From: Octopus sinensis
Lineage: Eukaryota
Direction: 5' to 3'
NCBI RefSeq assembly: GCF_006345805.1
Contig: NW_021832531.1
Span: 62,001-126,000, forward strand
DNA: 64,000 bases
Within the stretch, counting starts at the first letter, position 1. Each line of letters opens with the position of its first letter. Below the pieces are notes generated by a model. The model made no database searches, had not been told where the DNA came from, and saw only the letters and a list, made by a program, of their open reading frames with translations. A program made the position numbers and the translations under genes. Shown piece after piece: positions 3,581-61,912 of this stretch.

Positions 3581-4449
3581 TTATAGTTGAATATCATTTT
3601 TGATCATTTCTTGGTAACTAGATTGTTGGGTAGAATTGGAGACAGAAAAGCTAACTGAGATGGTAATACGTCTCATTTCCGAAACGAAAGTAAGACTAAA
3701 TCCAATTAATAAAAACAAAGTCATGATTTCACAAAATGCTGCAAAAGACCAAAATTTTATGTTCTAAAAATAAATTGATAAAAAATAGAAACCTTAATTC
3801 CATTAATATCGACCGTCGATGTTCCAGCAAAAGCTAAAATGTACATAATATGCTTACTTATGATACTTCCAAAAATAGTCAAAATTGTCAGCACAATCCT
3901 CAAGGTTGTCACCCTGGCATCCTGACAAGACGCCTTTCCCAAAAACGTTTGCGAAATGCAGTAAGTGGGTTGACTGACAAAGACCATAATTGAGGCCATG
4001 TAATGCCCAGTCATAAAACTAGACTAAAGACTGAGGAAACAACAACAACTTTAAAATTCGCAATCAGGAAAGATCCAATGGATATAATAAGGCCGACAAT
4101 AAATGCAAGTTTGTTAATATTGTGAACTAGTTGGTTATTCTTAGCAATTCTACTCTTTACGTAGATGTAACGAACAAAAAATATAAAAACACCTAAATTA
4201 AAAATTCAATTCCAACTTATTATGGAAATTATTATGAGAGAAATTGAGAAAGAATGCCTTGAAAGCCACTGTCTGTTACTTCACTACAATTTTAATGCAA
4301 GTTTAGCACCTTAAATATGGAAAATATCCATTCCAGTTCTTAGTAGTTGAATAGATCACTGTTATTGATGTGATTAAGATCACAAAAACCGAGAAAGGGC
4401 AGAAATAAAACTTGGAGGTTGAAAGTGAATGTAGATTGTAATTCGTCAT
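3581..4449 (-). CDS. DRAM/TMEM150 (Frag1/DRAM/Sfk1) family membrane protein, spliced
   Basis: Spliced product includes YFPYLSE; VFIFFVRYIYVK...NKLAFIVGLIISIGSFLIANFK; AAFCEIMTLFLLIGFSLTFVSEMRRITIS. One apparent 1-bp slip near 4235. Confidence 0.75.
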
Positions 4450-24700: not shown

Positions 24701-27700
24701 AACAGACTGGAAGAGTCTGTGCTCTCCATACTTTCAATGCACATTCAAACGATTCAGCAAGCAATCAAATTCCGACATAAAACCGTTGAACTACTTGGAA
24801 GACATGTTCCTATTTTAAGGTCAAACATTTCAGATTGATGTCAATTTCAACTCAAATATGTTTATAACAATGAATCCGGCTGGAAAAGGATATGGTGGGC
24901 GACAAAAGCTTCCTGATAATTTAAAACAACTGTTTCGGCCAGTCGTCATGTCCAAACCCGACAATGAACTGATCGCTGAAGTGATTTTGTTTTCTGAAGG
25001 ATTTGTTGAAGCTAAGAAAATTGGGAAAAAACTTGTTTCAATATTTTCTTCTGCCGAGTGATATTTATTATGTTATTTCCAAGAAGTCTTCTTACATATC
25101 GTCAACATTATGATTGGGGATTACGGGCACTTAAGACAGTTTTGAAAAGCTGTGGAAATATTATCCAAAAAGTAGATCGAGAAAAAGGTTTTTTAACAGT
25201 TAAAACATTTTTAAGCTGGTTATAATGATATTGAATTTCATGTTGTGGTTGAAGCTCTGCGTCTTAATACTTTGTCAAAATTGTCTCATTATGATTCGCT
25301 CGTGTTTAATGATTTGGTCAAAGCTGTGTTTCAGTCTGTTCATCTGAGCAATGTCACTAACAACAGCCTGACTGAATATGTGAAACAGAGTTATGTTGAA
25401 ATGAATCTTACTGAATCTTCTATGCAGGTTTTTTATTAAAAGGGTATAAAATTTCTTAGATTCAAAAGGTTTTCGAACTACATGAGCAAATTCAACAACG
25501 CATTGGGGTCGTGATCGTAGGTCCCAGTGGATCAGGAAAGTCGACTCTTTGGAAATTATTAACAAATGCTTTGATAAAAAATGGACAAATAGTCCGACTA
25601 TATGCCCTAAACCCGAAAGCAGTGACAAAATTGCAAGTTTTTTAATCAAAAACAATAAACATATATTATAGTTGTTAGGACAGATTGACTATGACACTCG
25701 AGAATGGACTGATGGGATCTTAACATGCGCTGCTCGTCAAATTGTTAGAGAGTCCTCAGAAATACTCTCTTTCGTGGTCTGTGATGGAGACATTGACCCG
25801 GAATGGATCGAATCCCTTAATTCTGTCCTCGACGATAATCACCTTTTGACACTCCCATCTGGTGAAAGAATTAAATTTGGAGAAAATGTCAATTTTATTT
25901 TTGAAACGCATGATCTGACGAATGCTTCTCCAGCCACAATTTCCCGCCTCGGAGTTGTCTATATCAGGTATTTTTTAACAAAATATGCCGACTAGTAATG
26001 AGACTATAGATTTCTCCGCAATTGTGAAATCTTGGATTAAAAAATTTAGCTCAGACAACGAAAAACTTGTTGAATGGATTGAAACTTATTTTCACAAAGT
26101 TTTTGATTGGTGTCTCAAAGAGGTTTCCACAAATTTGCAGAATTTCTAGATTGGGACAGTCATCCCGATTAGTGCTGTTGGAGTAGTTAATAGTGGGTTG
26201 TCACATCTAAAAGGAGTTTCGAATTTGTTGGAATTTGCCATCGCAATGATTCGTGGATTCGGAAGTAACGGAAAAACAATTTTCCGTCAGCGTTTAACTC
26301 ACTACGTAATTTCTTTTATTTATTATTTTTTCAGGTTTTTGAACTTATTGGAGAAAATAAGAAATCAGCTGATCAAGTTGGGTGGTATTTTGACGGAGAA
26401 AAGTTAAAAACCTTCACCGATGATGTATTCTGTCTAAATTATAAATAGTTCGATGCCGATTCTGTAAAAGAAACTTTTTTGTAAACACTGCACTCGCGCA
26501 ACAAAAAATGAGTTTCTACACAAGACTATTAGATTCGGACAATATTCACAACTTTCTAATGGTTGGACCACCAGGAAGCGGGAAAACGTATTTCAATAAA
26601 CAGAACTCTTATTTACTAGTCTAATGCTTGAAAAATGTTGTCGTGACCGAAGATCTGTTTATTTGACCACAATTTACTGCAGTACAGAGACGAGTCCTCA
26701 ACATTTAATTCTCCGCCTTTCTCAACTATGCATTATGTTAACCACTGCGACAGGAAGAGTTTACAGACCAAAAGATTGTGAAAGAATTGTTTTATATCTA
26801 AAAAACATTGATTATTGTAAACCAGATAAATGGGGAACGACTCAACTTGTTGCTTTTCTTCAACAAGTTTTGAGTTGCTATAAATTTAGATTTTCACGTA
26901 TAACGGATTTTACGACGATAATCTTGAATTTGTTCTTTTTGAGGGAATTCAAATTGTGTGCGGAATTAGTGACCATGATACTGGTCGGCATGTGTTGTCA
27001 AGTCGATTCACCTCTGAGATTCCAGTGTGCTATATCGAGTAAACTAAAAATGGTTAAAATCTCGCTAGACCGACAGAAGAAGAGGAAATGAAAAAAATAT
27101 TTTATAATTACGTTTTGAATTTCAAACTTCCTGGCTTCTCTGGATTGACTGAACACAAAAACGTGGAACTGATAAATTTCCTGGTTAAGTTTTTTGTTGA
27201 GGTTTCTTGTGAGTAATTTAATAAATTATAGTTGAGAAAAAAAATTGACTTGGATAAAAATCCTCAATGTATATTTAGTCCCAAAGACTTAAGCAAAATA
27301 ATTTTCGGGGTCGCTAATTATGACTTTTCAGCACAATATGATTCAAAATATGTAAAAGATAATTTTTAGTTAAAATTAGTTATTGAAAGTGTTAGTACAT
27401 GAAATTCTACGTTTATTTCGTGATAGAATCAAAAAAGTTGAATCCTTAGAAATATTCGACGATTTATTACGTAATATGATTAAATCAAGTTGGAATTATT
27501 CACTAAATGATTTAACTTCAAGTTTATTTTGAATTTTAAATTTAAGCGATTTTTACATCTTTGGGAAATCCCTCGGCGAAGATGATCTCCACAGTGTCGA
27601 AGGACAAATTGAATTTGATTATTTTGGAAGGTCTCAAGCAATATGGTCTTGAATTTGTCAATAATCAATTAGCAAGGGAAATCACAGAACTAAATATAAT

Positions 27701-30700
27701 TCCGGTAGATGACTTTGTAGAAAATGTTTTGAAAATTGATCGGATTTTGATTCAGCCGCGTGGATCTGTTCTCTTCGTTGGGAGTAGCGGAATTGGAAGG
27801 ACATCCGCGGTTATGCTTACTGCTTATATGCATGGAATAAAGATTATAACTCCAAAAATAGGGAAAATGTATGAAATAAGACAATTTAAAGACTATTTGA
27901 AAGCTGTCAGTAAATTCTAAAATATTTTCAGGCAATGCAATCTGCTGGTATTGAAGGAGAAAAAATAATATTTTTGTTGAAAGATCATCATTTGAGAAAT
28001 CCATCTTACTACAAAATGATCAACAGTTTTTTGTCTTCTGGAGAAATCCCTGGCTTGTATAAAACCGGGGAACTTGAGTCGCTGATATCCGTTTTAAATG
28101 AGATGTGTTCTGAGACAAATTTTGACGGATCTGTCAATAATTTTTTCCTTTCCAGTTTTGTATGTGCAAATATATTTTCAGGAGTTCAAAAAAATCTGCA
28201 TATCGTTCTTATAATGAATGATAAGGCTGACAATTTTTCTACTGTTTGTCACGAGAATCCAGCTTTCTTTAAACATTGCAACATTATTTGGCAAAATAAC
28301 TGGAAAACTGAAACGATGAGACTGGTTCTTTCTTAAATCTATTTTTACAAGATTCCGGAATTGCTTTTATCAAAATTAAATAAATCGAATGATCTAGTTA
28401 CTTCTAAAATGAATAAAAAAACTGTGGATGAACAGCTGGCGACTTATTTTTACGAAATTAATAAATCCTGCCAGGATATTTTGATTGACACATCTCCATT
28501 CAAATATATTTCGTTTATATCAACCTACCAAAAGGTCATGAACGAGAAGAAAACGATTTTAGAATCCAGGGTTGCTCGACTAATGGTAGTTATACATATT
28601 CATTTTTAGAGCGGATTAAATAAATTAAACGAATCTAAATTGTTGGTTGACGATTTGAGGACTGTGGCAGCTGAAAAATCAAAGTTGCTGCCAATAAAGC
28701 AACAAAAAGCAGACGAAGCTCTCCAGCAAATAACGCAAACTATGCAAGTATCATTTTGATTGATATAAAATAAAGGAAACAACAAAACAGAGAGAAGAAA
28801 TTGAAAAACTACAAAAACTTATAATTAAAGAAACCGATAAAATTACAGAGAGAAAAAAACCAATCGACCAAAAGCTGTCAGCAGTCCAACCTACGATTGA
28901 AGCTGCAAATGCTTCAATTCGCGGAATAACCACCGACTCTCTCACAGAAATAAAATCCATGAGAGTTCCTCCCGATATTGTTAGAGACATTCTTGAATGC
29001 GTATTGCGACTGATCGGGATCAAAGACGTCTCTTGGAATAGTATGAAGAAAGTTTTAGGTACGAGAGGAATCAAAGAAGATTTGATCTCGACGGATATTT
29101 CAAAAATCAGGTCAGAAAATTGGAAGAACGTTGAACTGATTGTTTCTCAACGTTCTGAATCTTTTGAGGAAAAAGTGATCCAATTTTACTAAAGACTGAA
29201 TTAGAATGCAAAAAGGGCTTCTTTGGCTGCAGCTCCGTTGGCTCAATGGACAAAGGCAGTACTTCAATACGCCAAAGTCTACGAATCAATATTAGACTTA
29301 ATGACGGAGCAAAATGAACTTAAAATGTATTTCAGGCTGTTTTTAACTGTTTCAGAAACATAAATAAATCCCAAGAAAGACTAAAATCGCTGCAAACTGA
29401 AATGAGTAAAGTAGATGAACAAATTTCAACTTTACGAACAAATTTTGAATCCCATACTCGAGAGGCCTCAAACTTGAAAGAAGAACTCTCCAAATATCAA
29501 AATACAATCACAGCATCCGCAACTCTGATTGAGAAATTACACGGAGAAAACGAAAGATGGACCAAACAAGTTAGTCTTGGAATCAATCATTCATAAAGAT
29601 TGATGAGATTTCTAAAGAACTCAAGTCTCTTCAAGTCCACTCAATATTGGCTGCTGCTTACCTTACATACATGCCTCCTGCATCGGAAACAATCAGAGAA
29701 AAATGTCTTAAGTCGTGGATGGAACTATTTGGAGTTGACAATTTTAAATTTGGTTCATTTTTTGAAAGTGAAAGCGAAAAAATCACATCAAAATCCAAAG
29801 GAGAAAACTTTATCATGATAAAACAAGTTTGAAAAATTAAACAAACTAAAAAAAGAGTATCTTGGTACTCTTCATTATTGATCCGTCTGAGCGGGCAACC
29901 ACTTTCCTAAAAAATAATTATCGTGATTCAAAAATTGAATTCGTACAACAAAAAGTGATTGAAAATATTCAAAATAAAAATAGGATCCAAATTTTACAAC
30001 TTCATTGGAATTAGCGATTCGCTTTGGAAAACCTTTGGTAGTCATCGAAGCAGACGAGATTGAACCAATACTTCATCCCATAATTCGAAATGAAATCAAA
30101 ATTCGAGGTCATCAGTAAATAAACTGATCCTCAGGATTACACCAAACGATTGAACTCGGAGACAAAACATTGGACTACCACGAGAACTTTAAGCTAATTT
30201 TTATCACACGAAATGAAAACGTGAAGATCCATCCTGACCAAAGAGATTTTATGACAGTCATAAATTTCTCAACTTCAAAGGCGGGACTCAGAGATCAGGT
30301 GATCCTCATCTTTCCATTTTAGTTATTGGAAATTACTGTAAAACATGAAAAGCCTGAACTCCAGTTGAAATTATCAGAATTGGCAGAGTCCGAAAACAAA
30401 ATGTCTTTAGAATTGATCCAACTAGAGGATTCCTTAATAGAGGCATTTTCCGCTATTTTATTCGTAGAACTTAACAAAATCTCGCGGAAACATTCTTCAA
30501 GATCTTGACTTGTTAGAATCTCTCAACAAACTCAAGGAAAGCAGTCAAATTGTTTCCACAGCATTAAAAGAGTCAAGACAACTACATTCAAAATTCACTG
30601 AAGAAGAAACTGTCTTCCAAGAATTCGTAAAGTTCAGTTCCCGAATTTATTTTCTTTTGGGAGATCTCTATAAACTCAACTCAATGTACCAATTTAGTTT

Positions 30701-33355
30701 GCAATCTTTCCTGGCTGTGTTTGAAAAATCCATTTTTCAGTGCGCGGTCGGTTTATAAACTTTACTGATAGAAACGACATAAAATTTCTGAATGTAAACC
30801 TTACCAGACTTTTCTGTCAGAGACTTTAATGCGGAATGCCTACGACTATGTCTGTCGTTCTATATTTAACGAAGATCGACTCACATTTGCTTTATATTTT
30901 ATACATTCTGTACATCCTCAGTTATTCGAAAATCTTGTAAGTAATAAATTCTATTTTTATAAAGGAATGGGAAGTTTTCAACCGGCAATTCGAGTCTTAT
31001 CCTGGAAACGAGTCAATTCCAGACTGGATTGAAGAGGATCGACGAGAATCAGTTAAAACTCTTCAAGTAAATTTAAATTACGAAAAAACAGGTCAACTTA
31101 CCAGAATTGTATTCTCGTCTAAATTTTTGTTGTGGAAATGTTTGGCAAAAGTTTTATAATAGTCCACAATGTGAAAAAGATTTTCCAGAAATCAAACTTT
31201 CATCATTCCAACGAGTTTTAGTAGTCCAAGCTCTTCGACCTGATCGATTACATTTAGCACTAAGCGAATTTTCTTGCAATTCATTAGGTTTTACATTTTA
31301 CCGACATTTTAAAGGAATTCCCGACATTTCTTGTGGACTGTTAAACATACGGGACATTTATAGCCACGAATCATCCTCTAATAATCATATACTATTTATA
31401 ACATCTCCCGGATCTGATCCGTCGGAAGAGCTTCAAGAATTGGCTGAGAAAATGGGCAAACTTGGTCAATTTCATCAGATATCAATGGGGAACGGTCAGT
31501 GCGAAACTGCCATTAATGAACTTGCGAAAACTGCCAAATTAGGGCATTGGATTTGTCTGAAAAATCTTCATCTTGTGACACATTGGTTGCCATCGTTGGA
31601 AAAGGTAAAATTAAAAAAATAAACCTCAATAGGAACTTACTTCTCTAAAAGACCAACATGCTGACTTTCGTTTATTTATGTCAACTGAACAGCACTGTAA
31701 TTTCCCATCCACGTTGCTTCAAATATGTGTCAAGATTACTTACGAAGTATTTCTTTGGTTTATATATAGGCTCCACCCGGAGTGAGAAATAACATGTTTC
31801 GCTGTGTTAGTTCCATTCCTAATGAATTTATCACACCTTCGATGCCTTCTTTGTCACAAGCAGTATTTTCTCTCATGTGCTTTCACGTGGTTGTGCAAGA
31901 GAGGCGTCGATTTATACCACAAGTTTGATTTTTGAAAACAATTCTTTTAGGGGTGGAATATGTTCTATGAGTTTTCATACTCGGATTTTAAAATTGGTCT
32001 GGAAATACTTAATAGAATAATTTCAAAGGGTAATATTCGGCCATTCTACCCTTATCTATAGCTTCTGGGAAGATCAGATGGGAAATAGTCCACGGCTTGT
32101 TCGAAATCGCAGTTTACGGCGGCCGAGTAGATAATCCATTTGATATGCGGATTCTTAAACACTTAATAAACAAATATTTTAATTCCCGCGCTCAGGATTC
32201 CAAGGAAACAATCGGGTATTTTAAAGTCCCCTCAGAATGCACATATAATGTAAAAAATATTTATTTGAATGATTTTAAGGGTTTTTTAAAGTCGATTGAA
32301 ATGATTCCCGACATTGACTGTCCCGGAATACTTGGTTTACCTGCAAACACAGACAAGTCTGTACAAGATATTAAAAGTGGTGTTGTCTTAACTGGACTAC
32401 GACTTTTGTCTAAATTCAATGTAGAATCAGTAACATTCGATAAAACCATTGCCTTGCTGACCATCAATCCTTTGCTAAAGCAGTGGAAGGTTTGCAATAA
32501 GGTTGTCTTGATGAGTTATTTTGAAGGATAAACGGTTTATTGAATTGGAAATGAGTCATCCTGAATATGATTCGAGTCATTCACCAATTCGTAGTTTTGT
32601 TGAAATTGAATTTTTTACTGTGGTTGAACTCGTAAAAATAATTCATTCTGATCTTGGAGCTTTAAGTAATTACTTACGGGACAAAGCAGTCCTATCACCT
32701 GAAAGTCGTGAAATTGCAAAGGATTTGATCAGTCACGTGGTATTGAGTTTAAAATTTACCAAAGGTCCCGGCTAAATGGTCCTCAAAGTGGGAAGGACCG
32801 GCAAATCCTTTGAAATATATTTCCATGATTGCGTCTAAAGCTTATAAAATCGAGAAATGGCTTAATCTAGTTCGTAGTGGCAATCTATTTTTACACGAAA
32901 TAAATTTAGCGGATTTACTAAGACCAAAAACATTTTTAAAGTCACTGAGACAGTTTACTGCAATGTACTTTTTTGAAATATTATTTTAGAACGGAACGGA
33001 TTGAAATGGATCTTTTGCAGTTTTGCTGTGATTGGACAGATAAGGAAAACAACAAAATTGGAATCAAAGTAGAAGGATTAGAACTTGAAGGCTGTTTATT
33101 TTCAAAAAATAAATTTATCCCGAGTTCTGTTAGTTCGCCTATTGTAACAAGAGTTCCAGTATGTTTCATGTCTTGGAAGGTGGTCATTATTTTAAGTAAT
33201 GTCAGAATATAATCACAGAGCAATTTGAAATTCCAGTCTATTTGGACAGGAATAGAAGCAAAGTTGTTATTTCTATTCCCGTCGAATGTTCAAAGGATGA
33301 AGCAAGTCAGTTGTCTCTTGCCGGAGCTGCATTTTTCCTGTCGGACTTAATTTAA
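18755..33355 (+). CDS. DYNC2H1: Cytoplasmic dynein-2 heavy chain (retrograde IFT motor), about 4200 aa, about 72 miniature introns
   Basis: P-loops GPAGTGKT (AAA1), GPSGSGKS (AAA2), GPPGSGK (AAA3), GSSGIGR (AAA4); [14 protein letters not shown]; [23 protein letters not shown]; [13 protein letters not shown]; C-terminal LAGAAFFL. No in-frame nonsense codons after manual splicing. Three 1-bp slips (about 19355, 19703, 26478). Confidence 0.95.
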
Positions 33356-37823: not shown

Positions 37824-40084
37824 ATGGTGAAAAAAGTTAAATATTATTTTTAAAAACTAGGATAATCCTGAAATTAAATTAGAAACAAATTCTAAAAACA
37901 AAAAGTATAATCTCATATCCAAAATAATAATCAGAAATGAAAAAAATAACATTTCTAAAAAACCAAAAAAAGAACGCATTCCACAAATAAAAAAAGAAAT
38001 CAATCCAGACCAACCCGACCAAAAAAAACTAAAAAAATCATCCAAAAGAGAACATCCCGACAACCTCAAATCATCTCCCTCCAAGCTACAAAAACGTATT
38101 AAAAAAGAAGAGGAAGACGAATCCCGTTGGAAGTGGTAATACCAACAAATTCCGTGAAATCAACAGGTGGGAAGAACCCCTAAAAAACAATACAATAAAA
38201 TGGACAACTCTACATCACAAAGGCCCTGTTTTTCCGCCAGAATATGTACGTTTGCCAGAAAACATAAAAATGAAATACGACGGTTTTTTTATTTTGGTGA
38301 TTTGTGAAGGAAATGAGGTGATTTTGAGTTCTCCGGCAGAAGAAGTGGCGGGATATTACGCTCGGATGTTGGATCACGAATTCACAACGATGGAGACATT
38401 TAGAAAGAACTTTTTTGAGGATTGGACGTCAGTCATGTCAGAAAATGAGAAAAAACTAATAAAAAACTTGGAATTGTGTGATTTCAGGCCAATCCACGAC
38501 TTTTATGTCGAACAAACCGAAAAACGGAAATCCATGTCTAAAGAAGAGAAACAAGTGAGTTGTCTAATTCTAACCAAAGTCCCTGAAAGAGGCAAACGAG
38601 AAACTCCAAGAGGAGTTCGGTTTTTGTATTTTGGACGGTCATCGCGAAAAAATCGGCAATTTCAAAATCGAGCCTCCTGGACTGTTTCGAGGAAGGGGAA
38701 ACCACCCAAAAATGGGCAAGTTGAAAAGTCGAATTCGGCCAGAGGACGTGACTATAAACTGCAGTGCTGACACCACTGTGGACCCGCCCCCCGGAAGTCG
38801 GTGGAAGGACGTGATTAATGACAATTCCGTGACTTTCCTGGCCAGTTGGACAGAACCGGTGTTAAATACAACGAAATATATAATGCTGGCCTCCTCCTCC
38901 AAATTGAAGGTTTTTCCGCAAGTCCTGAGGCTTGGCAGGGCGTGAAGGACATGGAGAAGTTTGACTTGGCCAGGAGACTCCACGGAAGGATTGAGGACAT
39001 CAGAAGGAACTACAACGACGACTTCAAGTCCAAGGAAATGGGCAAAAGACAACGTGCCGTGGCCCTTTATTTTATTGACCGATTGGCATTGAGGGCGGGA
39101 AATGAAAAGGATGAGGATACTGCAGATACGGTGGGGTGTTGTTCCCTCAGAGTGGAGCATGTGACTCTGCATGATGACTATGTTGTGGAGTTTGACTTTC
39201 TGGGGAAGGATTCTATTCGATATCAAAACAAGGTTGCCGTCTTTCCCAAGGCGTATAAAAATTTACGGATTTTTATGAAGGACAAAAAACCGGAGGACAG
39301 TCTATTCGATAGTCTGTCGGTTTAAATTAACTATTTAATGTCCAAGACGACATCTTTGAACAAATATCTCCAAGAGTTGATGCCAGGGTTAACCGCCAAG
39401 GTTTTCCGTACTTACAACGCCTCGAGGACCTTGGAAGACCAACTGGAAATCCTCACTGACCGTATATCCGCATTTTGTGTTATGAATAGCCAATTCTTTG
39501 GTCGCGGAAAAAGTTTTGTCGTATAATCGAGGCAATCGGGCAGTGGCAGTGTTGTGTAATCACCAGAGATCGGTTCCTAAGACATTTGCCAAGTCAATGG
39601 ATAACATGCAACGAAAAGTGAGTTTATTTTTCAGTATTTTTAGATTGAGGGGAAAAAGACAGCAATTGAGGAATTGGAGAAGGAGTTGAAGACAAGAAAA
39701 GCTGATTACGTAACTTCTCAGACAGAATCGAAACGAAAGTTTGATTTGTTACTTTTATAAATAATAGGTCGTATGAAGCAATGCAGAAAAAGGTAAGTAC
39801 GGCACTGAATACGTTGGAGAAGTTAAAAATGACCGCGACGGATCGTGTATGTGCATTTGGTGGATTTAGGTTAGGATGAGTGTAAACAGATTGCAATGGG
39901 GACTTCAAAGTTGAACTATTTGGACCCGCGTATTTCTGTTTCTTGGTTTGGTTTTGTTTGGATTGTTTGTAGGTGTTTGAGAAATGACGTGCCTATTGAA
40001 AAGATTTACAACAAAACTCAGCGAGACAAATTTCGTTGGGCAATTGAAATGACTGATGGCACTTATAAATTCGTGTCCAGTTAG
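37824..40084 (+). CDS. TOP1: DNA topoisomerase IB, spliced
   Basis: [16 protein letters not shown]; [16 protein letters not shown]; [21 protein letters not shown]; [12 protein letters not shown]; [11 protein letters not shown]; [10 protein letters not shown]; AVLCNHQR; [12 protein letters not shown] (catalytic Tyr). Confidence 0.97.
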
Positions 40085-40399: not shown

Positions 40400-41700
40400 T
40401 TATAAAGGCGATTAAAACAAATTGCATTTAAAGAATCATTTACTAAAATAATTATTTATCTTCTTCAAAAAAATAGATATTATTTAAGATAGGTTCGTAA
40501 CTTGTATTTCTCAAATCAACAAATTTTTGTTTCCAAATAAAACTGTAATGTAGATCTATTAGCTGTATTTCCAGATCTTCAAATTAAGTTTATCAAATGT
40601 AATTGAATCTGGATATATTATAAATTTGGATGTTTGGGGAAATAGTTTTAATTCAACAAATCTCGAAGAAAATTCATGAATTACTGACTTAATTAACGAT
40701 GAAAATTCTAGAATTTGTTTAGGTAGATCTATTTTTCATGCACAAATAAATTTAATTTCTAGAATTTTTTGGTATTTTTTAAATATTTAAATTGTTGGAA
40801 AGTACATCAAGATTAAAAACAACCAATTTAACCTAAATACCTGAATTGAATCAATCGTGTGATATAATAATTTATTAACACCTTGCAAATTCAAGCTGAA
40901 TTCAATTAAATGGCACGTAAAATCTGCCAGAAATGTTAGTTTAAGGATCCATCCAGGGTCCATTAATTGTGGATACTTATCAATTACTTTTTCACTCTGT
41001 AAAAATATTTGCACTTCATCCAAACACTGGACAAATTGTTCAATAACTTTTCCACGGCTCAACCATCTTACATTGTTATACATAATTAATCCTTTTAGCC
41101 GATTATAAATATTTATAAAAACCCATATGTACTGAATTTACTTCATTTAATAATGTCTGAAATTTTCTTTTATTTAAGGACCGAGCAGATATGAAGTTAA
41201 TTATTTTGTGACAACGATTGTAATGTGCTCGAATGACTCGAATTCAGATTTTGCGATCTAATGAAAACCACGAACTGGATGCCCGACGTGCTGTGTAAGT
41301 AAGCTGAAAAAACCATTATTCTTTCCAATCATAGTGGGTGCACCATCTGTGGTTATTGATACTATTTTTGAAATATCTATCTTTTTCTCTGTGATCGAAT
41401 TTACAATTGTTTAAAAATATCGACTTTTGTAGTTGTTGCTAATGCTGGCAAACACAATAATTCTTCCAGAATAGTATTCACGGCGTAATATCTGATAAAA
41501 ATTGCTAGGCGTGACAATCCAGATGTCAATACTTTCGTCAACACAAAGGGAAATGAAATACAAGATTTAATATCTTTACTTTGTTGAAGAGAGATATTTT
41601 CACTCATCACCAAAATTCTTTATTGCTGACCCATATTCTCCTCCATAAATAACTTCGTAGTTTTTATTCGCCAACTTGTACGATTACTAAAAAGTCAGGC
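40400..41700 (-). mobile_element. Old degenerate hAT transposase (GTF2IRD2/EPM2AIP1-like); no TIRs recognised
   Basis: VRWLSRGKVIEQF; LTFLADFTCHL..FSLNLQG; RLAIFIRY...EELLCL; EDLEIQLIDL; many stops and frameshifts. Confidence 0.8.
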
Positions 41701-41789
41701 AGAAATGCCCGCCCACATTTAACCGATTAATTGTTATCTAAATATAACAAATACAAAATACTTTTTCCTTTCAGATGCTTGACGGGTTT

Positions 41790-42680
41790 TAGAGGTTCAT
41801 CAACAGCAAATTTTTATCAAAGTTAATCACAATTGAACGATTTGAAAAAAATACGGTACTGTGACGTTCGGTGGGCGATATCCAACGATTGCGTCTAATA
41901 ATTCGTCGAAAGCGTTGTCCAAATGGCTCACTTGCCTTCTCCATAAAAATTCTACACATTAAATCGGAGTATACCAGCAAAGTATTCACCCATGTAGTGT
42001 CGTGCGGTTCCTCTGTGTCTTTTATTGCGCCATTTTGCGCTCCTCCACATTCTCTCCACAGTCTGAGTATGTGCACCGGTCCTCGGGTCTACAAAATTCG
42101 CCTGTGATTGACTGTAAGGTGCACATGTGCAAGAGCATTAAGATCTGGCGTTGAATAACCTATTAACAAGAATAAAGTAATTACAATTACCATTCCATTT
42201 GTCAGAGTATATCACTAAACCCGGTGCGATAATATACCAATCAATGTGTTCGGACGATTAACTAAATAATCAGCACATACCTCCCGCAGGGAGTGAGACC
42301 AATTACAAATAGTTTGGCTACTCCACTCCAATTGACGCCGACACCATGAAATTGTGTGTCTGTCAAAGCTCCACATATAGATAAAACGAATACATGATGC
42401 TAAGGGCACTGTCTTGCCTTCGAGCCACGTACCTAAAAATAAAGTTCTCTCTTATTATACCGTTTCTGACAGAACTATAAGTTCGGCACTCGCTTTTATT
42501 GCACACCCATGTGGTAGTATCCCGCTGAAGGGCCATGAAATGTCTTTTTTCGCATTTCTTTTCCATTGGTATGATTCCGACCTCCTGTAAGAACGTAACT
42601 GACTCCATTTCCGACCGTGGTAGTTCGTAGTCCTTCAATTTAGAAAAATTTCGCATACAAAAGTTATTATTCATCCCCAC
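41790..42680 (-). mobile_element. Merlin (IS1595/ISXO2-like) transposase remnant, internally deleted, with two miniature introns
   Basis: WVCNKSECRTYSSVRNG|TWLEG; TICNWSHSLREVC; VIYSDKWNG|Y...VNH...FVDPRTGAHTQTVERMWRSAK...RGT. Introns at 42433-42460 and 42160-42190. Confidence 0.85.
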
Positions 42681-42932
42681 AACGCACTTACAAATTCAAA
42701 ATTTTATTTAAAAAAATTTATAATAATATTTACAAATTCGGCATTGTTCATTTGTTTTAATTTTAGTTCAAATAATCAAAAAAATTTTCCAAAATTCAGT
42801 TAGAGCATTATTTCGTGCAGCATGAAATCTACAAGTACCAAAAATACATTTCCGTCTACATTAAAAACAAGATCTGTATATTTTTGGTATAAAAATGTGT
42901 TTTCTGTTTTTTGACCTTGCACAAAACAAGTA

Positions 42933-45900
42933 CAGTACGACCCCGGTTTGGGGCAGACCCCATGGGTGGGGCACCCTCGGGTTTTGGGGCACCCCCGCTT
43001 TTAGGGGCAGTTTTTGAAAACAGTAAATTTTTCATTCTATTATTTATTTTTGATGACCCCGGTTTGGGGCACTTATTTAATTTATTTAATTACAAAATGT
43101 TAGTTTATTTATTAATTATTAATTAATACTATTATTTCACGTGTTTATTTTGACTTTAGTATGGTTCGTAAAAAGAATTCAAAGATTAATTATGAAACAA
43201 AAATTAAAATCGCTAAAGATATAAAACATGGTCAATTTTCAGAAAGAGATCTTGCTAAAAAGTATAAAACGACCAAAGGTATCTTTTTAACTAATTATTA
43301 ATTACAGGTACTATTTCTCGCATTAAACAAAATTTTGTTTATTATTTTGACGCGGGATTAACTGAATCCGATAGAATCAAGGAATCACATGATCCAAATA
43401 ATGAATTAGATAGATTAGTTTTTGAAACTTTTCTACGTCTGAGAGATGAATTTCTTCCAATTTCTGGAACTATCTTAAAACTGATTGCAAAAAAATTATC
43501 TAAAAAGATAAATTATGAATCATTTAAGGCATCAAATGGATGGCTAGACCGGTTCAAGAAAAGACACGAGTTGCTATTTAAAACTATAAGTGGAGAAAAG
43601 AATTCATCTGACCTTTCTACGGTTTCCAATTTTTTTGCTGATTATGACAACTGTTTGGAAACTGTAGGAAGTGAAAATATTTTTAACTGTGATGAAACAG
43701 CTTTATACATAAAGCGAACGCCGTCGAAATCTTTTGTTCAATTTAATGACAAATGCAATGGAATTAAAATGAGCAAAGAGAAAGTTACCCTTCTCCTTTG
43801 TTGTAATGCACTTGGTGAAAAGTTAAAACCTCTATTAATTGGAAAATTCAAATCTCCTAGGTGTTTAAAAAATTTTAACGCTGAGGATCACGGAGTACTA
43901 TATGCTGCATCAAAAAATTCGTGGATGACTAGTGATATTTTTGGGAAATGGTTATGGAAAGTAAATCAAGATATGATCAATGAAAAGAGAAAAATTGTCT
44001 TAATACTGGATAATGCGAGCTGTCACAGAAATACAGAATATTCCAATGTTTATTTACTTTTTCTTCCCAAAAATACGACCGCTTTAATTCAACCCCTAGA
44101 TATGGGAATAATAAAATCCTTCAAGTCCCTCTATTTCAATAAACTGATTGATTTTACTCTTATATTTGAAAAAGAACAGCTTTCTGATTTGAATTTGAAT
44201 AATGTCAATCTTAGACAAGTCATTACAGTTGTCGGGGAGGCATGGAAAATGATGTCAGAGACAACGATAATTAATTGCTGGCAGAAAATAAATGAAAACA
44301 GATCAAAAATTTCGGATAATGTACAGTTGGACGAAGAATTAATAGATGACGTGATTTCAGATGTTATTTCAATGGATTCGACAGATATTACAGTACGACC
44401 CCGGTTTGGGGCAGCATTTTTATCATAGTGCCCCAAAAAGCGGGGGTGCCCCAAAATGCGAGGGTAAAGATTTTTTGCTTTTATTTTCTCCTCAATAGAT
44501 TTTTATTGCATTTTAGACTATAAATTAAAATTATTTAATATTAATAAAATTCTAACATAGTCCTTTCTAATAAAATTTAAAAATTTTAATAAATCCAACA
44601 AAAAATACTATTAAAAGTAATCAGTAATTTTCTCACCGAATTGGTTTTTTTTTCAGTTCTCCTGATAGGTTTTTTCTAAATTCGTAGTAGATTTTCAAAA
44701 ATTGTGGACATGTACTGAAAATATTATCTTCTAGAGAATTCACGATGTTTATGATTTCTTTAATTGATGATTTTTTAGATTCATATCCATCATAAGTAAT
44801 TTTGTCCTCAATACAGTACGACCCCGGTTTGGGGCAGACCCCATGGGTGGGGCACCCTCGGGTTTTGGGGCACCCCCGCTTTTAGGGGCAGTTTTTGAAA
44901 ACAGTAAATTTTTCATTCTATTATTTATTTTTGATGACCCCGGTTTGGGGCACTTATTTAATTTATTTAATTACAAAATGTTAGTTTATTTATTAATTAT
45001 TAATTAATACTATTATTTCACGTGTTTTTTTTGACTTTAGTATGGTTCGTAAAAAGAATTCAAAGATTAATTATGAAACAAAAATTAAAATCGCTAAAGA
45101 TATAAAACATGGTCAATTTTCAGAAAGAGATCTTGCTAAAAAGTATAAAACGACCAAAGGTATCTTTTTTAACTAATTATTAATTACAGGTACTATTTCT
45201 CGCATTAAACAAAATTTTGTTTATTATTTTGACGCGGGATTAACTGAATCCGATAGAATCAAGGAATCACATGATCCAAATAATGAATTAGATAGATTAG
45301 TTTTTGAAACTTTTCTACGTCTGAGAGATGAATTTCTTCCAATTTCTGGAACTATCTTAAAACTGATTGCAAAAAAATTATCTAAAAAGATAAATTATGA
45401 ATCATTTAAGGCATCAAATGGATGGCTAGACCGGTTCAAGAAAACACGAGTTGCTATTTAAAACTATAAGTGGAGAAAAGAATTCATCTGACCTTTCTAC
45501 GGTTTCCAATTTTTTTGCTGATTATGACAACTGTTGGAAACTGTAGGAAGTGAAAATATTTTTAACTGTGATGAAACAGCTTTATACATAAAGCGAACGC
45601 CGTCGAAATCTTTTGTTCAATTTAATGACAAATGCAATGGAATTAAAATGAGCAAAGAGAAAGTTACCCTTCTCCTTTGTTGTAATGCACTTGGTGAAAA
45701 GTTAAAACCTCTATTAATTGGAAAATTCAAATCTCCTAGGTGTTTAAAAAATTTTAACGCTGAGGATCACGGAGTACTATATGCTGCATCAAAAAATTCG
45801 TGGATGACTAGTGATATTTTTGGGAAATGGTTATGGAAAGTAAATCAAGATATGATCAATGAAAAGAGAAAAATTGTCTTAATACTGGATAATGCGAGCT

Positions 45901-46691
45901 GTCACAGAAATACAGAATATTCCAATGTTTATTTACTTTTTCTTCCCAAAAATACGACCGCTTTAATTCAACCCCTAGATATGGGAATAATAAAATCCTT
46001 CAAGTCCCTCTATTTCAATAAACTGATTGATTTTACTCTTATATTTGAAAAAGAACAGCTTTCTGATTTGAATTTGAATAATGTCAATCTTAGACAAGTC
46101 ATTACAGTTGTCGGGGAGGCATGGAAAATGATGTCAGAGACAACGATAATTAATTGCTGGCAGAAAATAAATGAAAACAGATCAAAAATTTCGGATAATG
46201 TACAGTTGGACGAAGAATTAATAGATGACGTGATTTCAGATGTTATTTCAATGGATTCGACAGATATTATTGAGGACAAAATTACTTATGATGGATATGA
46301 ATCTAAAAAATCATCAATTAAAGAAATCATAAACATCGTGAATTCTCTAGAAGATAATATTTTCAGTACATGTCCACAATTTTTGAAAATCTACTACGAA
46401 TTTAGAAAAAACCTATCAGGAGAACTGAAAAAAAACCAATTCGGTGAGAAAATTACTGATTACTTTTAATAGTATTTTTTGTTGGATTTATTAAAATTTT
46501 TAAATTTTATTAAGAAAGGACTATGTTAGAATTTTTATTAATATTAAATAATTTTAATTTATAGTCTAAAATGCAATAAAAATCTATTGAGGAGAAAATA
46601 AAAGCAAAAAATCTTTACCCTCGCATTTTGGGGCACCCCCGCTTTTTGGGGCACTATGATAAAAATGCTGCCCCAAACCGGGGTCGTACTG
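42933..46691 (+). mobile_element. Compound Tigger/pogo locus: copy A (42933-44390, truncated at an internal TA), inverted right end (44391-44811), complete copy B (44814-46691)
   Basis: 24-bp TIR CAGTACGACCCCGGTTTGGGGCAG at 42933, 44391, 44814 and (inverted) ending 46691. TA at 42931-2, 44389-90, 44812-3 and 46692-3. The copies differ almost only in homopolymer lengths. Confidence 0.95.
45042..46469 (+). CDS. Tigger/pogo transposase (CENP-B HTH plus DD29D catalytic domain) of copy B, one intron; the copy A equivalent starts at 43161
   Basis: FKASNGWLDRFKKRH; NCDET; NSWMTSDIF; LDNASCH...29 aa...QPLDMGII. Copy B has -2 and -1 slips (about 45445, 45533) that are intact in copy A. Confidence 0.9.
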
Positions 46692-48409
46692 TAATAAGAA
46701 TAATAAACATTTCTCTACGATTTTTAGAATCTGTTGCCTTGTTTACAAAATTTTACATTTTTCAAATATTTTTTCTTGGAAATACCAAGCGACGACTTGG
46801 TTTCTTTAAAAACGAACTCAAACCTTCCGCTATCCACAGACCATTCAAAGCATTCAAGTGGAAACCTAATTGGTGTCATATAATCTTTCAAAAGCTTAAA
46901 GCTTGACTTCTACCAGTACAGTCTGGCCTGCTTTCTTTCTGCTGCACACATCAGTGCTAACCGATATGCGGGTTTGACTGATGTGTCCCTCTCAGTTCAG
47001 GCAATGGGTTTTTTCGAATTGAAATCAAATCAGATTTCTCATTTCGAAGAGACCAAAGACCTTAGTAAACTTTTAACTATTCCAAACAAATGGCCCGGCA
47101 ATCTAAAGACGTAGCAATGCCACAATTTTTAGATATTCTTTTTGAATCGCTTACTTTTGTATTATCGTAGCTTTATTTTATGAATTTAGTAATTATTATT
47201 CAAGTGTTGATCTCTGCCTAAATCCCTATGTTTCCTTCTTTAGCCAAATTTTTAAACAGGAAAATCTTTTACCACACCCAAACCTCCAGTTCTATTTCGG
47301 TGGCGTTTGCATTCGCAGTTGTGATTATCTACTATTTAATCAACTTTTTAGTTAATTTTGTTAAGGATATAAAAATGGTTCGAATCCTTGCGTATATTCT
47401 AAAGGTTCTTCGATCTTGTGTTTTGTTATCTTTTTTTAATGATTAATAATTGTGGTTGAATAATGAATTTGTGGCTGACATTACAAATTAAACTTGGTTT
47501 TTCAAGGATAGTTGCGCCATTTTCAGTTTCTAGATACAATTTTTAAAAGCCAACAGTTAGGTTTCCCTTACAATATTATTCATATGAGGAAGAAAAGAAA
47601 TATATTTCCACCTATAGAAGATTGATTTTTAACTCAGATAGTTGAGATTAAATATTCAGATTCTTCATATTTTCAAGTTATCAAAAGTAACAAAAATTTC
47701 ATATTTTATGATTTTTAAAAACCTGCTGGCATCCTAAAAAGTTTTTGAAATCCTTCAAGGAAATTGAAAACTAATCCGTTTTCCAGCTTATTTTTAATCC
47801 ATCTTAATTCTTAATGAATGTTGTTCTGAAAATAATTATTTTCGTCAATTAAATAACCTCAAAACAAAAAGCCCAACTTACATTATACTTTTTGAATCCA
47901 ACATTACTAAAACAACACGGAACGATGTCAGAACTCTTTCCGATGTGAGGAAATTTTTGGATGAAATTCTTTTATATCAATTTCTATTTGCACGAACACG
48001 TTTCTCTGTTCAAATTACTAATAATTATACCTAAAGGATAAAAAATATAGATTAAAGACTCTTCAGGCTCTCATTTTAATGGAAATATGGTATGTTTAGT
48101 TCCGTAAAAATTATATTAACCTGAAATTAGAAGTAATTTTATGTTGTTTAAACCTTCTACCGATTCTTAATTCATTTTCAAACACATTATGGCAATTAGA
48201 TATTAGTTTTTCAAACACCAATAGCTTATAGAGTTTCCCGAAGCATTGACATAATGAAAAGAAGTGACTAATGTTTAAATTATCGTAATTATTAGTTTCA
48301 AAGATTTATTTTGATGAAAGTAAAATGTTACATTGAAACTAATTAAATTTTTTATGCTAATGCATAGAACAATTTGATAATCGACCTAATTTTCAATACG
48401 ATCGATCAC

Positions 48410-52128: not shown

Positions 52129-53324
52129 ATGGAATGGATCAATAATGTAAAGCTTGATTTCAAAGACATTTTAATTGTCCCTAAGAAAAGCAAAGTCAAA
52201 AGCAGATCTAGCGTATTAAAAAATGTTCCCCATATTTATCATAGGTTAATTTGGAGACTAGTTATACATTCAAATATGCAACTGTCCCATTTAATGGAGT
52301 TCCTATAATGGCCAGTAATATGGATAGTATTGGTAATTTTCAAATGGCATCTGTTCTCTCTAAAGTAGCTGTATTTTATTTCTACTTAAAGTATAAAATA
52401 CACACTGTTATTTCCAAGCATTACAACACCGCAGAATGGCTTGAATTTGTAAAAAAGAACTCTGAATGTCTTCCAGTTGTGTGATGACGTAATCATTATA
52501 GTACGTTTCGGTTAGCACGGGACTTCACGATAAAGATTTGGAAAACGTTGTTAGCATTATAAAGGCAGTTCCCGATGTCAAATCAATCTGCATTGACGTG
52601 GCCAATGGATATATGGAAGATCTGTCGTTTTTTACTACTAAAGTCAGAAACCTTTATCCAAATCATATTATTATGGTCGGAAATGTGGTCACTGGAGAAG
52701 GAGTCAAAAAACTACTTAATTCTGGCGCTGATATAGTGAAAGTTGGGATAGGTTCTGGATCTGTTTGTACTACACGGATAATGACTGGAATTGGTTATCC
52801 CCAGTTTAGTGCTGTCTTGGAATGCGCAATCGCAGCCAAGGAATGCGGTGGGCATATTATTTCAGTTATACCTTTGATAATATATTTAGGATGGAGGTTG
52901 CGTATGTCCTGGAGACATTGTAAAAGCTTTTTCCGCTGGAGCCAGCTTTGTTATGATTGGTGGAATGTTTGCAGGGTACGATGAGAACGGAAGCGTAATC
53001 GAAACTGCTAACTCTTCTACAAAAACGATGTTATATTATGGAATGAGTTCAAAAACGGCTATGAATAAATATTCTGACTCAAATTTAGAAAATTACAGGT
53101 CGTGAAATTTTTAAATAAATTTTAGAGGATCTGAAGGGAGAACTATCCGCATAAAATGCCGAGGATCTATAATTCCAGCCATTAACGACATCTTTCATGG
53201 ACTAAGATCTGCTTGTTCGTATGTCGGAGCAGAGCAACTAGAGGACATTTCTAAGGAAGTCTCCTTTATTCGTGTGGCTCGACAATATAATGACGTTTAC
53301 GCACCTTTTACTGTTGGGGATTAA
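52129..53324 (+). CDS. GMPR: GMP reductase (GMPR/GuaC type), 5 introns
   Basis: KLDFKDILIVPKKS..KSRS; PIMASNMD; ICIDVANGY; VKVGIGSGSVCTTR..TGIGYPQ (catalytic Cys); SDGGC..PGDI.KAF.AGA.FVM.GGM; YGMSS; SEGRT; GLRSACSYVGA. Confidence 0.95.
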
Positions 53325-60229: not shown

Positions 60230-61912
60230 ATGGAGGATGTATTTCACTTTATAATAACATATAGCCAATAGTCAAACAAACATTACAGACTCTGGTCTTT
60301 CGATCACTCAAAAGAACTCACGATATGTTCATTTCTGAGGCTTCTGACATTGCATTTGATAATGACCTGAGGTTTTGTCTTCTACTTTACTTCAGTGACT
60401 GTCTAAGTCTAAAAACTAAGCTAAGTTCTCGATTTGGAATGGCCCAAATTGCCAAACCAAATTCAGTGGACGAAATACTTAACCCAAGACGTTCTAATTA
60501 TATATAAATCAAATAGAAACCACAAAAGATATTTCATTTCCCGCCAATTTTATTCAAAATCCACAAAAGTATTTAAAATCAATAATTTTTAGTGGAAATT
60601 CAGAAAAGACGACTTGTCAGGTATTTTCAACAAATTTAAATTAAAAGCAACTTGTGTTGTCCAATGACAAAAAACTAGAGAAATATAAGGCTCCAGTGAC
60701 CCACAAACCAGATTGGCACCCTCCGTGGAAATTATACAGAGTTTGGTGTTTTATTTGAATTTTAGGTTTTGTGTGGTCACGTGGGTTGGGTGAGATCCCT
60801 TTCAGTCGAGCCGGGCAATTCTTGGTTCGCTTCTGGGGGAGCCGACCGAATTATTAAGGTTTAAATGATGGTTATTGAATGTGTCAGATTTGGGATTTGG
60901 CTTCAGGAGAGTTAAAGTTGTCTTTGACAGGACATGTGGGGTCAGTCCGAGGTGTCGTTGTGAGTCATAATCATCCCTATTTATTCTCCTGTGGAGATGA
61001 CAAACAGATTAAATGTTGGGATTTGGAATGTAACAAGGTATTATTTAGAATTGAGTTTTATTATTATTTTTAGGTTATTAGACACTATCATGGCCATCTG
61101 AATGGCATATTCACGATTGATCTTCACCCTAAACTGGACATACTTTTTACAGGAGGAGCTGATTCCACTGCAAGGGTAACACAGGTGTGTGACAGTAGGT
61201 GTGGGATATGAGGACTAAGGCATGTATTAATACGTTGGCCAGTCATTCCAGTACTGTTGCTGTTGTTAAATCACAGCAATACGAGCCTCAGGTGGTGATT
61301 GGGTGTTGATTTTAAAGTTAATGACAGGAAGTCATGACCATACTATCAGGTTGTGGGATTTGAGGACATGTCGTACCCACGCTACATTGACACATCACAA
61401 GAAGAGTATTCGAGCAATCTCCATTCATCCTTCTCTGTTGATTTAAGTCATAATGTGAGCAGATATTGTTTTGCTTCTGCCTCTCCTGATAATATAAAAC
61501 AGTTTAAATGTCCCGATGGTGTGTTTATGCAAAATCTGAGCGGACATAAGTCGATTATAAATGCATTGGCTGTCAATGACGACAATGTTTTAGTTTCGGG
61601 GGGTATTTTGTGGTTTCGAATTGTTTTAGGTGACAATGGGACACTCTACTTTTGGGATTGGAAGACGGGGTATAATTTCCAGAGATACCACGCCCCGGTA
61701 CATCCTGGGTCTATGGACGCCGAAAGTGGGATTTTTGGATTGACTTTTGACATTTCTGGAAGTAGGTTAATCACTGCAGAGGCAGACAAGACAATAAAGA
61801 TATATAAGGAGGACTCTACTGCGGTGAGTGTTGGTGTTTGTTAGTAATTTAGACTGAGGAATCACATCCTGTTGACTGGAAACCTGAAATTTTTAGACGC
61901 TCTAAATTCTGA
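60230..61912 (+). CDS. PLRG1: Pleiotropic regulator 1 (Prp46), spliced
   Basis: [14 protein letters not shown]; [17 protein letters not shown]; GHVGWVRS; [16 protein letters not shown]; [11 protein letters not shown]; [11 protein letters not shown]; [18 protein letters not shown]; HPVDWKPEI. Confidence 0.96.

Follow-up and report, generated by a model that had tools for sequence, protein, structure and literature searches.

Tip-to-TA joints in a rearranged pogo-superfamily element point to transposase attack on a TA within the element itself

Introduction

How did a DNA transposon come to carry its own right end in inverted orientation, bounded on both sides by TA dinucleotides and joined to a structurally complete copy of the same element? 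This question is raised by a locus in the window, the whole stretch of 64,000 nucleotides that was analysed. Although the contig is labelled Octopus sinensis, it probably comes from a dicyemid parasite, and for curation this means that the RefSeq 'Octopus sinensis' proteins placed on it are probably dicyemid proteins. The original prediction had described the locus as a Tigger dimer with an internal inversion, for which two mechanisms were thought to fit exactly.

Results

A base-level check of positions 42931-46693 gave the segment order TA, L-x, TA, inverted y-R, TA, full element, TA, where L and R are the left and right ends and x and y are the internal sequences on either side of an internal TA. 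The left, rearranged copy is referred to as copy A and the full element as copy B. The features are listed below.

42931-42932, no strand: outer left TA target-site duplication
42933-44388, + strand: arm 1, L end and internal x, 1456 bp, 99.7% identical to 44814-46267
42933-42956, + strand: 24-bp terminal inverted repeat (TIR) of arm 1, from the motif map
44389-44390, no strand: internal target TA, first of the two copies, directly followed by the inverted right TIR, whose outer tip is at 44391
44391-44811, - strand: arm 2, R end and internal y, inverted, 421 bp, reverse complement of 46270-46691
44812-44813, no strand: internal target TA, second of the two copies, directly followed by the left TIR, whose outer tip is at 44814
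44814-46691, + strand: copy B, structurally complete, 1878 bp, perfect 24-bp TIRs, 99.0-99.7% identical to six monomers
46268-46269, no strand: undisturbed internal TA (GATAT-TA-TTGAGG), homologous to the hit site and single within copy B
46692-46693, no strand: outer right TA target-site duplication

The positions given in the original prediction for the five TA dinucleotides and the four tips were all exactly right. The 23-nt tip CAGTACGACCCCGGTTTGGGGCA has four matches in the window, each with 0 mismatches (expected number, 0), and the motif map shows GGGGCA motifs at 18-bp spacing within arm 1. No further whole or partial copy of the element was found in the 64-kb window from which the structure might be explained by independent insertions, and scans of the window for tRNAs and tandem repeats gave nothing relevant. 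The two L-x arms are 1 substitution and 3 indel events apart, the two y-R arms differ by three single-base indels only, and each of these indels lies within or adjoins a short single-base run.

Every monomer of the family has a single internal TA; at the window joints it is duplicated, and one copy is joined to the R tip at 44391 and the other to the L tip at 44814, as had been claimed; one tip of each kind is used. Because each new joint connects an element tip to one of the two internal TA copies, both are attributed to the transposase, in agreement with the earlier reading. The use of one R and one L tip is the mark that a normal L+R transpososome leaves on attacking a TA within the element. 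The segment 42933-44813 has the permutation of an inversion circle, L-x-TA-R'-y'-TA.

On its sequence features the element is a DNA transposon of the pogo superfamily, within the IS630-Tc1-mariner group. The family occupies at least seven loci in the assembly, of which the six others are plain monomers, and a TA is present on both sides at 7 of 7. The TIRs are perfect over 24 bp and start with CAGTA. The transposase matches Pfam HTH_Tnp_Tc5 (3e-13) and DDE_1 (7e-39) as well as the N-terminal domain of CENP-B (1hlv, 2e-10), thereby combining the helix-turn-helix (HTH) with DDE_1. Its catalytic triad is D168, D274 and D304, and the 29 residues between the last two confirm the predicted DD29D spacing and lie within the pogo range of 29-59 (family ranges in PMC7386202). 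The name Tigger went further than these features allow, in that DD29D fits Tigger, pogoR and Lemi alike, and the closest relatives carry the annotation names TIGD6-like and TIGD4-like, which point to pogoR, the family from which the TIGD6/TIGD4 genes are derived (PMC7386202). The element resembles Tigger and pogoR in its TA duplication, CAGTA-starting 24-bp TIRs, CENP-B-like HTH with DDE_1, and DD29D, and differs from them in two features, an intron of 29-30 nt and subterminal arrays of GGGGCA that are asymmetric.

That intron is required for the transposase ORF, and the splice is supported by an intronless relative, P0003 (ERR3671687), which at 47% identity is the closest relative outside. 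The coding features of copy A are as follows.

43161-44428, + strand: 3'-truncated transposase ORF of copy A, 412 aa, Pfam HTH_Tnp_Tc5 and DDE_1
43161-43278, + strand: exon 1
43279-43307, + strand: intron
43308, + strand: start of exon 2

The copy A ORF ends in ...DSTDITVRPRFGAAFLS* with the stop at 44426-8, and its last 12 residues are encoded by the junction TA together with the right TIR in inverted orientation; the truncated ORF with a TIR-derived end that had been predicted is thus present. The RefSeq model XP_029655427.1 rests on this region, and because the 29-30-nt intron was not used, the annotation pipeline mis-modelled the gene. Copy B is not intact as assembled. Two deletions, of 2 bp at 45444 and of 1 bp at 45534, put about 30 codons, containing stops, out of frame; the frameshift is possibly a PacBio homopolymer error. 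An intact DD29D transposase of 466 aa is encoded by the family consensus and by one monomer (copy L001). The prediction of a probably active DD29D transposase therefore holds for the family but not for the two window copies, one truncated and the other frameshifted.

Divergence within the family was examined in eight sequences, namely the two window L-x arms and six monomers elsewhere in the same assembly. The six unlinked monomers differ by some 2 substitutions in 1.9 kb, a substitution divergence of about 0.1%, and small indels, mostly within or adjoining single-base runs, occur in all family copies. No family member of more than 90% identity was found in the protein collection outside the source assembly. 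Current activity of the family is suggested by its seven or more loci, by the low divergence of about 0.1% and by the intact 466-aa DD29D transposase. The near-identity of copies A and B had been taken to imply a very recent event, but the unlinked copies are 0-5 substitutions apart and are as alike as A and B, which differ by 1; dating the event from A/B identity was ruled out for this reason. One substitution was informative.

43273 (also 45154), + strand: private substitution at element position 341, C in both arms, G in all six other copies

This is the sole non-singleton substitution among the eight sequences, shared by one pair of 28 possible, and it gives Thr38 in the window arms as compared with Ser38 elsewhere. 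Because the C is private to the two L-x arms, it points to a common parent element for both. The shared variant is a single site, and a sister copy acting as an ordinary donor fits it too.

Four routes to the structure were simulated in silico and their products aligned to the window. All four yielded the same sequence, identical to the window at 4158 of 4166 positions, the 8 mismatches being small differences between A and B. The two mechanisms originally proposed do reproduce the structure, as was claimed; they share this property with two others, one involving sister chromatids and the other an insertion followed by a flip.

Discussion

Our preferred reading, held tentatively, is a hybrid-end ('alternative') transposition between sister chromatids, involving one element and one step. 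It would begin with a single pogo-superfamily element at this TA, the locus being replicated. A transposase complex would then pair the R end on one sister chromatid with the L end on the other, and both freed tips would attack the internal TA of the first copy (element position 1455-1456), which lies 422 bp away from that copy's right tip. The R tip would join the x side of the target, and the y side would join the L tip of the sister copy. As a result, y-R would be inverted and the TA duplicated, and the recipient chromatid would read L-x-TA-(y-R inverted)-TA-L-x-TA-y-R inside the original TA flanks, while the remaining two flanks would be rejoined as an empty site and lost by segregation. 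The route is supported by the exact geometry of the joints, and it predicts the sequence found. The shared C at position 341 is compatible with tips taken from two sister copies, though no proof of it, and the signs of current activity in the family also speak for the route. A history with a single insertion is supported by the outer flanks, which retain one simple TA duplication, and we favour the sister-chromatid route because no other manages with one element and one event. We infer that sister chromatids supplied the two ends and that a single step sufficed; since three other routes end in the identical sequence, the window does not prove either point. In vitro, Hsmar1 transposase synapsed the ends of two donor molecules and strongly preferred intramolecular targets (PMC3544897). 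Counting against the preferred route, the synapsis of ends on separate molecules is disfavoured for mariner-type elements on supercoiled DNA (PMC3544897). Both sister-chromatid and reversed-ends transposition are established for Ac/Ds, and there are reports of non-standard transposition by P, by impala (Tc1/mariner) and by Sleeping Beauty (PMC8225341; 10.1101/2020.01.07.897926).

One could envision other histories. An unlikely one is that a second copy entered the internal TA of a resident copy in inverse orientation and that recombination between the 421-bp inverted y-R arms later flipped the product. The donor would most simply be the sister chromatid's copy after normal excision, and the intermediate, L-x-TA-[R'-y'-TA-x'-L']-TA-y-R (a 'double element'), would have had a 1458-bp segment inverted. 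Its first step is standard transposition only, and close inverted repeats are prone to recombination, which speaks for the flip. When 44812-46269 was flipped in silico, we obtained a complete TA-flanked inner element of 1877 bp inside a complete outer element that matches copy B at 1876 of 1881 positions, and forward simulation gave the 4158/4166 fit already mentioned; without the flip, the nested model fitted at 3543 of 4299, and the window as assembled is not a 'double element'. The route nevertheless needs two events in a very short time, given arms at most 1 substitution apart, and a donor with the private C at 341, hence a sister or homologous copy; moreover, the longer 1456-bp inverted arms of the nested form should out-recombine the 421-bp arms and yield an isomer other than the one seen. 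We consider it rather improbable that, as originally proposed, an autointegration inversion circle L-x-TA-R'-y'-TA recombined through L-x into an intact copy on the sister or homologue. The permutation is exactly that of the left 1.88 kb, the simulated product fits equally well, and Hsmar1 yields inversion circles as a major product in vitro (PMC3544897), while such circles were also recovered for Sleeping Beauty in cells (PMC3952818). However, a gapped, non-replicating circle derived from the same parent element (position 341) would have to integrate in a second, independent homologous event, and no such re-entry of a Tc1/mariner or pogo element is reported in the cited papers.

The other original mechanism, in which the R end of A and the L end of B in a head-to-tail dimer sharing one TA undergo reversed-ends transposition into the internal TA of copy A, equals the preferred route in chemistry and product, and such transposition is well documented for Ac/Ds (PMC3744419). 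What makes it distinctly improbable is the rare prior event that it requires, an insertion at precisely the TA that flanks another copy; no trace of such an event is seen, and the other six loci, six of six, are plain monomers. The dimer is not demonstrated, and the sister-chromatid chemistry needs no pre-existing one. Very improbable, in our view, is an artefact of contig assembly over a multi-copy repeat. The assembly was built from PacBio and Hi-C data (Li et al. 2020, as cited in PMC10700109), and small homopolymer-type indels of the kind typical of incompletely polished long-read assemblies are present in all copies; yet chimeric or fold-back reads break at arbitrary places, not twice at a tip joined to a duplicated TA, and the 3.76-kb structure lies well inside single long reads. 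Three further candidates were rejected: a fold-back or missed-adapter read, in that the joints lie at tips and not at a palindrome centre; insertion of copy B beside a pre-existing odd fragment, whose end would have to coincide exactly with the internal TA by chance; and gap repair or template switching after excision, which predicts no tip-to-TA joints with a duplicated TA.

The phenomenon itself is already known from Ac/Ds, P, impala and Sleeping Beauty; the host and the family are new. As in the alternative transposition of maize Ac/Ds, one transposase complex would have used the ends of two element copies and inserted them nearby, and the inversion or inverted duplication is bounded by element tips and a target-site duplication. 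Unlike Ac/Ds, which is a hAT element with an 8-bp target-site duplication, the window element is a pogo element duplicating TA; its target lies inside the element, so that the rearrangement is confined to element DNA; neither re-replication nor a composite insertion has to be invoked; and the case is known here from sequence alone. In the autointegration of Hsmar1, Mos1 and Sleeping Beauty, both tips likewise attack a TA inside the element, and the inversion product has both ends reoriented and a duplicated TA, as in the left 1.88 kb here. Known products of that reaction are dead-end extrachromosomal circles, in vitro or from plasmids, whereas the window structure is chromosomal and joined to a copy of intact structure. 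The flip isomer of the window structure is what we take to be the maize 'double Ds' type, a Ds inverted inside an identical Ds, although the structure in the window, as assembled, lacks the nested arrangement. Drosophila P hybrid element insertion, Fusarium impala and Sleeping Beauty concatemers also draw on the ends of different copies or chromatids. In those cases, as cited in PMC8225341 and PMC1584263, DNA adjoining the donor is rearranged. They were recovered genetically, whereas here a footprint was read from an assembly.

Genetic work on Ac/Ds and P has documented the footprints of aberrant transposition well, and in natural genomes Tc1/mariner-pogo cases are seldom found intact, because direct 1.46-kb repeats should soon collapse such a structure to a monomer. 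The base-perfect footprint described here shows that a pogo-type transposase hit a TA inside its own element in vivo. It marks this as a family that was active very recently and probably still is, and that could supply a working pogo-type transposase. The case is also cautionary, in that hybrid-end transposition and insertion followed by recombination are indistinguishable from the product sequence.

The inverted duplication consists of 421-bp arms with 3 indels and a 1458-bp spacer, an inverted repeat of the kind found at 'killer' loci. Inverted repeats (I1-I3) were detected at the arms, which are predicted to fold into 420 pairs at -678 kcal/mol. Inverted repeats of Ac/Ds can yield dsRNA ('Ac killer' alleles; PMC3744419; PMC8225341; 10.1101/2020.01.07.897926). 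It is a speculative and rather doubtful idea that the locus is a natural silencer of its own family. If so, a transcript from the copy A promoter would cross the antisense y-R arm into copy B and produce a 420-bp hairpin, or antisense RNA to the 3' end of every active copy; small-RNA silencing would be seeded against an active dicyemid pogo element, and the locus would do among Tc1/mariner-pogo elements what Mu killer and Ac killer do in maize. Early termination of copy A transcripts could result from the AATAAA/ATTAAA signals at 44524-44610. The TA-flanked unit 44391-46691 has two right ends and the 421-bp inverted arms and, as part of the same doubtful proposal, might be a newborn long-TIR derivative.

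Structure of the rearranged locus

Base-by-base reading of the region 42600-47100, with its segments aligned to each other, resolved 42933-46691 into a left partial copy of a transposon (copy A, arms 1 and 2) and a complete element (copy B). L and R denote the left and right element ends, and x and y the parts on either side of the internal TA.

42931-2, outer TA, left
42933-44388, arm 1 (L plus x), 1456 bp
44389-90, duplicated internal TA, first copy
44391-44811, arm 2 (reverse complement of R plus y), 421 bp
44812-3, duplicated internal TA, second copy
44814-46691, structurally complete element (copy B), 1878 bp
46268-9, the one internal TA of copy B, context GATAT-TA-TTGAGG
46692-3, outer TA, right

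This map of TA dinucleotides and segments is exactly that of the original prediction. A search for the 23-nt element tip gave four exact matches in the window, where none is expected by chance, and a BLAST search of the window with the element found no further copies. Alignment of arm 1 with the left part of copy B shows one substitution and three indel events, and that of arm 2 with the right part shows three single-base indels; all of these indels lie in or adjoin short single-base runs.

The element and its transposase

After removal of a GT-AG intron (29 nt in copy A, 30 nt in all other copies), the element protein comprises 466 aa and carries the Pfam domains HTH_Tnp_Tc5 and DDE_1, an N-terminus resembling the CENP-B DNA-binding domain, and the catalytic residues D168, D274 and D304, a DD29D triad. 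An intronless relative with 47% identity supports the splice: it reads YQTSKGTISRIRK uninterrupted over the junction, and it also keeps the C-terminal tail. The element belongs to the pogo superfamily. The earlier label "Tigger", in the strict sense, is not established, as DD29D fits Tigger, pogoR and Lemi alike. The closest transposase relatives carry the annotation names TIGD6-like and TIGD4-like; the TIGD6 and TIGD4 genes are derived from pogoR (PMC7386202). Among named relatives outside the assembly, several of the closest (38-48% identity) come from amphipod microsporidia (Dictyocoela, Cucumispora) and others from rotifers and molluscs, a distribution suggesting that such elements spread horizontally among parasites and invertebrates of aquatic habitats.

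The TIRs are perfect over 24 bp. GGGGCA motifs are found in the left end at positions 18, 36, 54 and 72, with an exact 18-bp spacing, and also at 134 (42933-43071, all copies), whereas at the right end one lies within the TIR and another two are oppositely oriented (46617-46691, all copies); the two ends are, therefore, not equivalent. A subterminal block of 37-48 bp forms a direct repeat at both ends, and it and the motifs are possible additional binding sites for the transposase.

Coding state and the element family

The original prediction inferred a probably active DD29D transposase; neither copy encodes an intact transposase as assembled. The copy A ORF is severed at the internal TA and encodes 412 aa (stop at 44426-8), the last 12 residues coming from the junction TA and inverted TIR; its product retains the DNA-binding and catalytic domains without the 62 conserved C-terminal residues. 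In copy B, deletions of 2 bp at 45444 and 1 bp at 45534 leave about 30 codons, with stops, out of frame. These frameshifts may be consensus errors, because the assembly is described as PacBio-based (Li et al. 2020, as cited in PMC10700109) and every family copy has private indels, mostly in or adjoining single-base runs.

Full-length monomers, all TA-flanked, are present on six other contigs of GCA_006345805.1 and are 99.0-99.7% identical to copy B. Within the family, two copies differ on average by 2.2 substitutions and about 6 indel events per 1.88 kb; three unlinked ones show no substitutions between one another, and both the majority consensus and one of the copies elsewhere (L001) contain the intact 466-aa ORF. 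Judged by these sequences, the family is very young and plausibly active. The near-identity of copies A and B, previously taken as a sign of a very recent event, therefore tells nothing of the date of the rearrangement, since unlinked copies are equally alike. At position 341 of the element, both window arms have C (43273, 45154), where the six remaining copies have G. No other substitution in the data set is common to two sequences, and this single site argues that both L-x arms came from one parent element.

The truncated ORF of copy A is the basis of RefSeq model XP_029655427.1, annotated as 'tigger transposable element-derived protein 6-like [Octopus sinensis]', whose contig in GCA_006345805.1 is 500,255 bp long. 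This and other RefSeq models of the family (205-561 aa; 43161-44428 and loci L001-L006) are fragmentary or chimeric relative to the real 466-aa product, because the pipeline made no use of the intron of 29-30 nt and the ORFs are disrupted by small indels in the assembly. One family copy is split by an insertion of about 980 bp (L003:4773-5753) with an 8-bp target duplication (ATTTAAGG) and TIRs (CAGGCATTCTCAACC / CAGGTGTTCTCAACC), features that point to a hAT-like non-autonomous element and thus to a second DNA transposon recently active in the same genome. A relative of the element (L004:2458-3600), 4 kb upstream of the L004 copy, has 83% identity across the left 99 bp and about 66% internally, a divergence indicating an older sister family.

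Origin of the rearrangement

Each new joint consists of an exact tip and one copy of the duplicated TA, with one R tip and one L tip used. We infer from known Tc1/mariner-type chemistry that transposase made both joints, as they would be the remnant of a normal L+R transpososome attack on TA. The chemistry proposed earlier is thus right, but the mechanisms listed, reversed-ends transposition of a tandem dimer or an autointegration circle, were incomplete. Candidate routes were simulated from one parental element, three computed products standing for four routes. All three products were identical and matched the window at 4158/4166; because the routes share one sequence, the product alone cannot name the route.

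In the route that we prefer, at nearly even chances, the R end of one copy and the L end of another would insert into the internal TA of the first (hybrid-end transposition), the two ends being supplied by sister chromatids of one element in a single event. We favor it because one element and one event suffice, the simple outer TA duplication is retained, the shared private variant is accounted for, and the component reactions are documented for relatives. Hsmar1 ends on two molecules are synapsed, with a strong preference for intramolecular targets (PMC3544897), and sister-chromatid and reversed-ends transposition are documented for maize Ac/Ds, whose end use is the same as that proposed here.

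Alternatively, the 421-bp inverted arms might have recombined after an ordinary inverse self-insertion. Flipping 44812-46269 in silico does restore a complete TA-flanked inner element within a complete outer one, and the simulated product is the 4158/4166 match; we regard this route as possible though doubtful. The nested form before the flip does not fit the window (3543/4299). Recombination of an autointegration inversion circle with an intact copy would give the identical product and seems improbable. Less probable still is hybrid-end transposition in a pre-existing tandem dimer; its product equals that of the sister-chromatid version, and the dimer itself is not established at the locus. 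Misassembly appears unlikely, the least probable explanation of all, as chimeric reads do not show two breakpoints, each at a tip plus a duplicated TA, and 3.76 kb is within reach of single long reads.

Genomic surroundings and host identity

The 64-kb window holds at least five unrelated genes (ZnT9/SLC30A9, dynein heavy chain, topoisomerase I, GMP reductase/IMPDH-type, WD40 protein), and the following segments illustrate its apparently compact character.

15634-16992, minus strand
23368-32531, plus strand
38252-39325, plus strand
52538-52984, plus strand
61353-61844, plus strand

A 22-nt intron (27913-27934) interrupts the dynein AAA_8 domain, the transposase intron is 29-30 nt, and the G+C content is 32.8%. 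The window ZnT9 is 47% identical to that of Octopus bimaculoides, no nearer than to arthropod or vertebrate proteins. The DNA looks like a compact, divergent metazoan genome, unlike that of an octopus. O. sinensis harbors Dicyema japonicum in its renal sacs; the genome of this dicyemid spans 67.5 Mb, is 36.7% G+C and 49% repeats, and its introns average 38 bp (PMC6736024). By these published statistics, the contig is most likely dicyemid (Dicyema) DNA co-assembled with its host; if so, the RefSeq 'Octopus sinensis' proteins on it are mislabelled.

On either side of the repeat-rich gap that holds the element are topoisomerase I and, near 50.3-50.8 kb, a probable minus-strand gene. Further transposon debris at 204-2851, 13400-13786 and 40787-42680 (minus strand) comprises reverse-transcriptase (RVT_1) fragments, a DDE_3 transposase fragment and broken ORFs directly upstream of the element that are transposase-like as judged by eye.

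Consequences and parallels

Ac/Ds, P, impala and Sleeping Beauty already provide examples of such rearrangements; what is new here is a clean, naturally occurring footprint in a pogo-type element whose host is probably a dicyemid. The structure is probably short-lived, since its 1456-bp direct repeats should recombine to a monomer. Joined by a tetraloop, the 421-bp inverted arms are predicted to form a 420-bp duplex (-678 kcal/mol), and they could pair as RNA if transcription of copy A continued through to copy B; such transcription might end early at the polyadenylation-like signals of 44524-44610. In maize 'Ac killer' alleles, alternative transposition generates inverted Ac repeats, dsRNA and Ac silencing (10.1101/2020.01.07.897926), a parallel in inverted element repeats that we offer as a lead only. 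The 2.3-kb segment 44391-46691, with TA on both sides, a right tip at each end and 421-bp inverted arms, could be mobile as a new derivative with long TIRs, end asymmetry permitting. The 5 bases beyond its tips (TATTA / TAATA) are complementary, probably by chance in AT-rich DNA.
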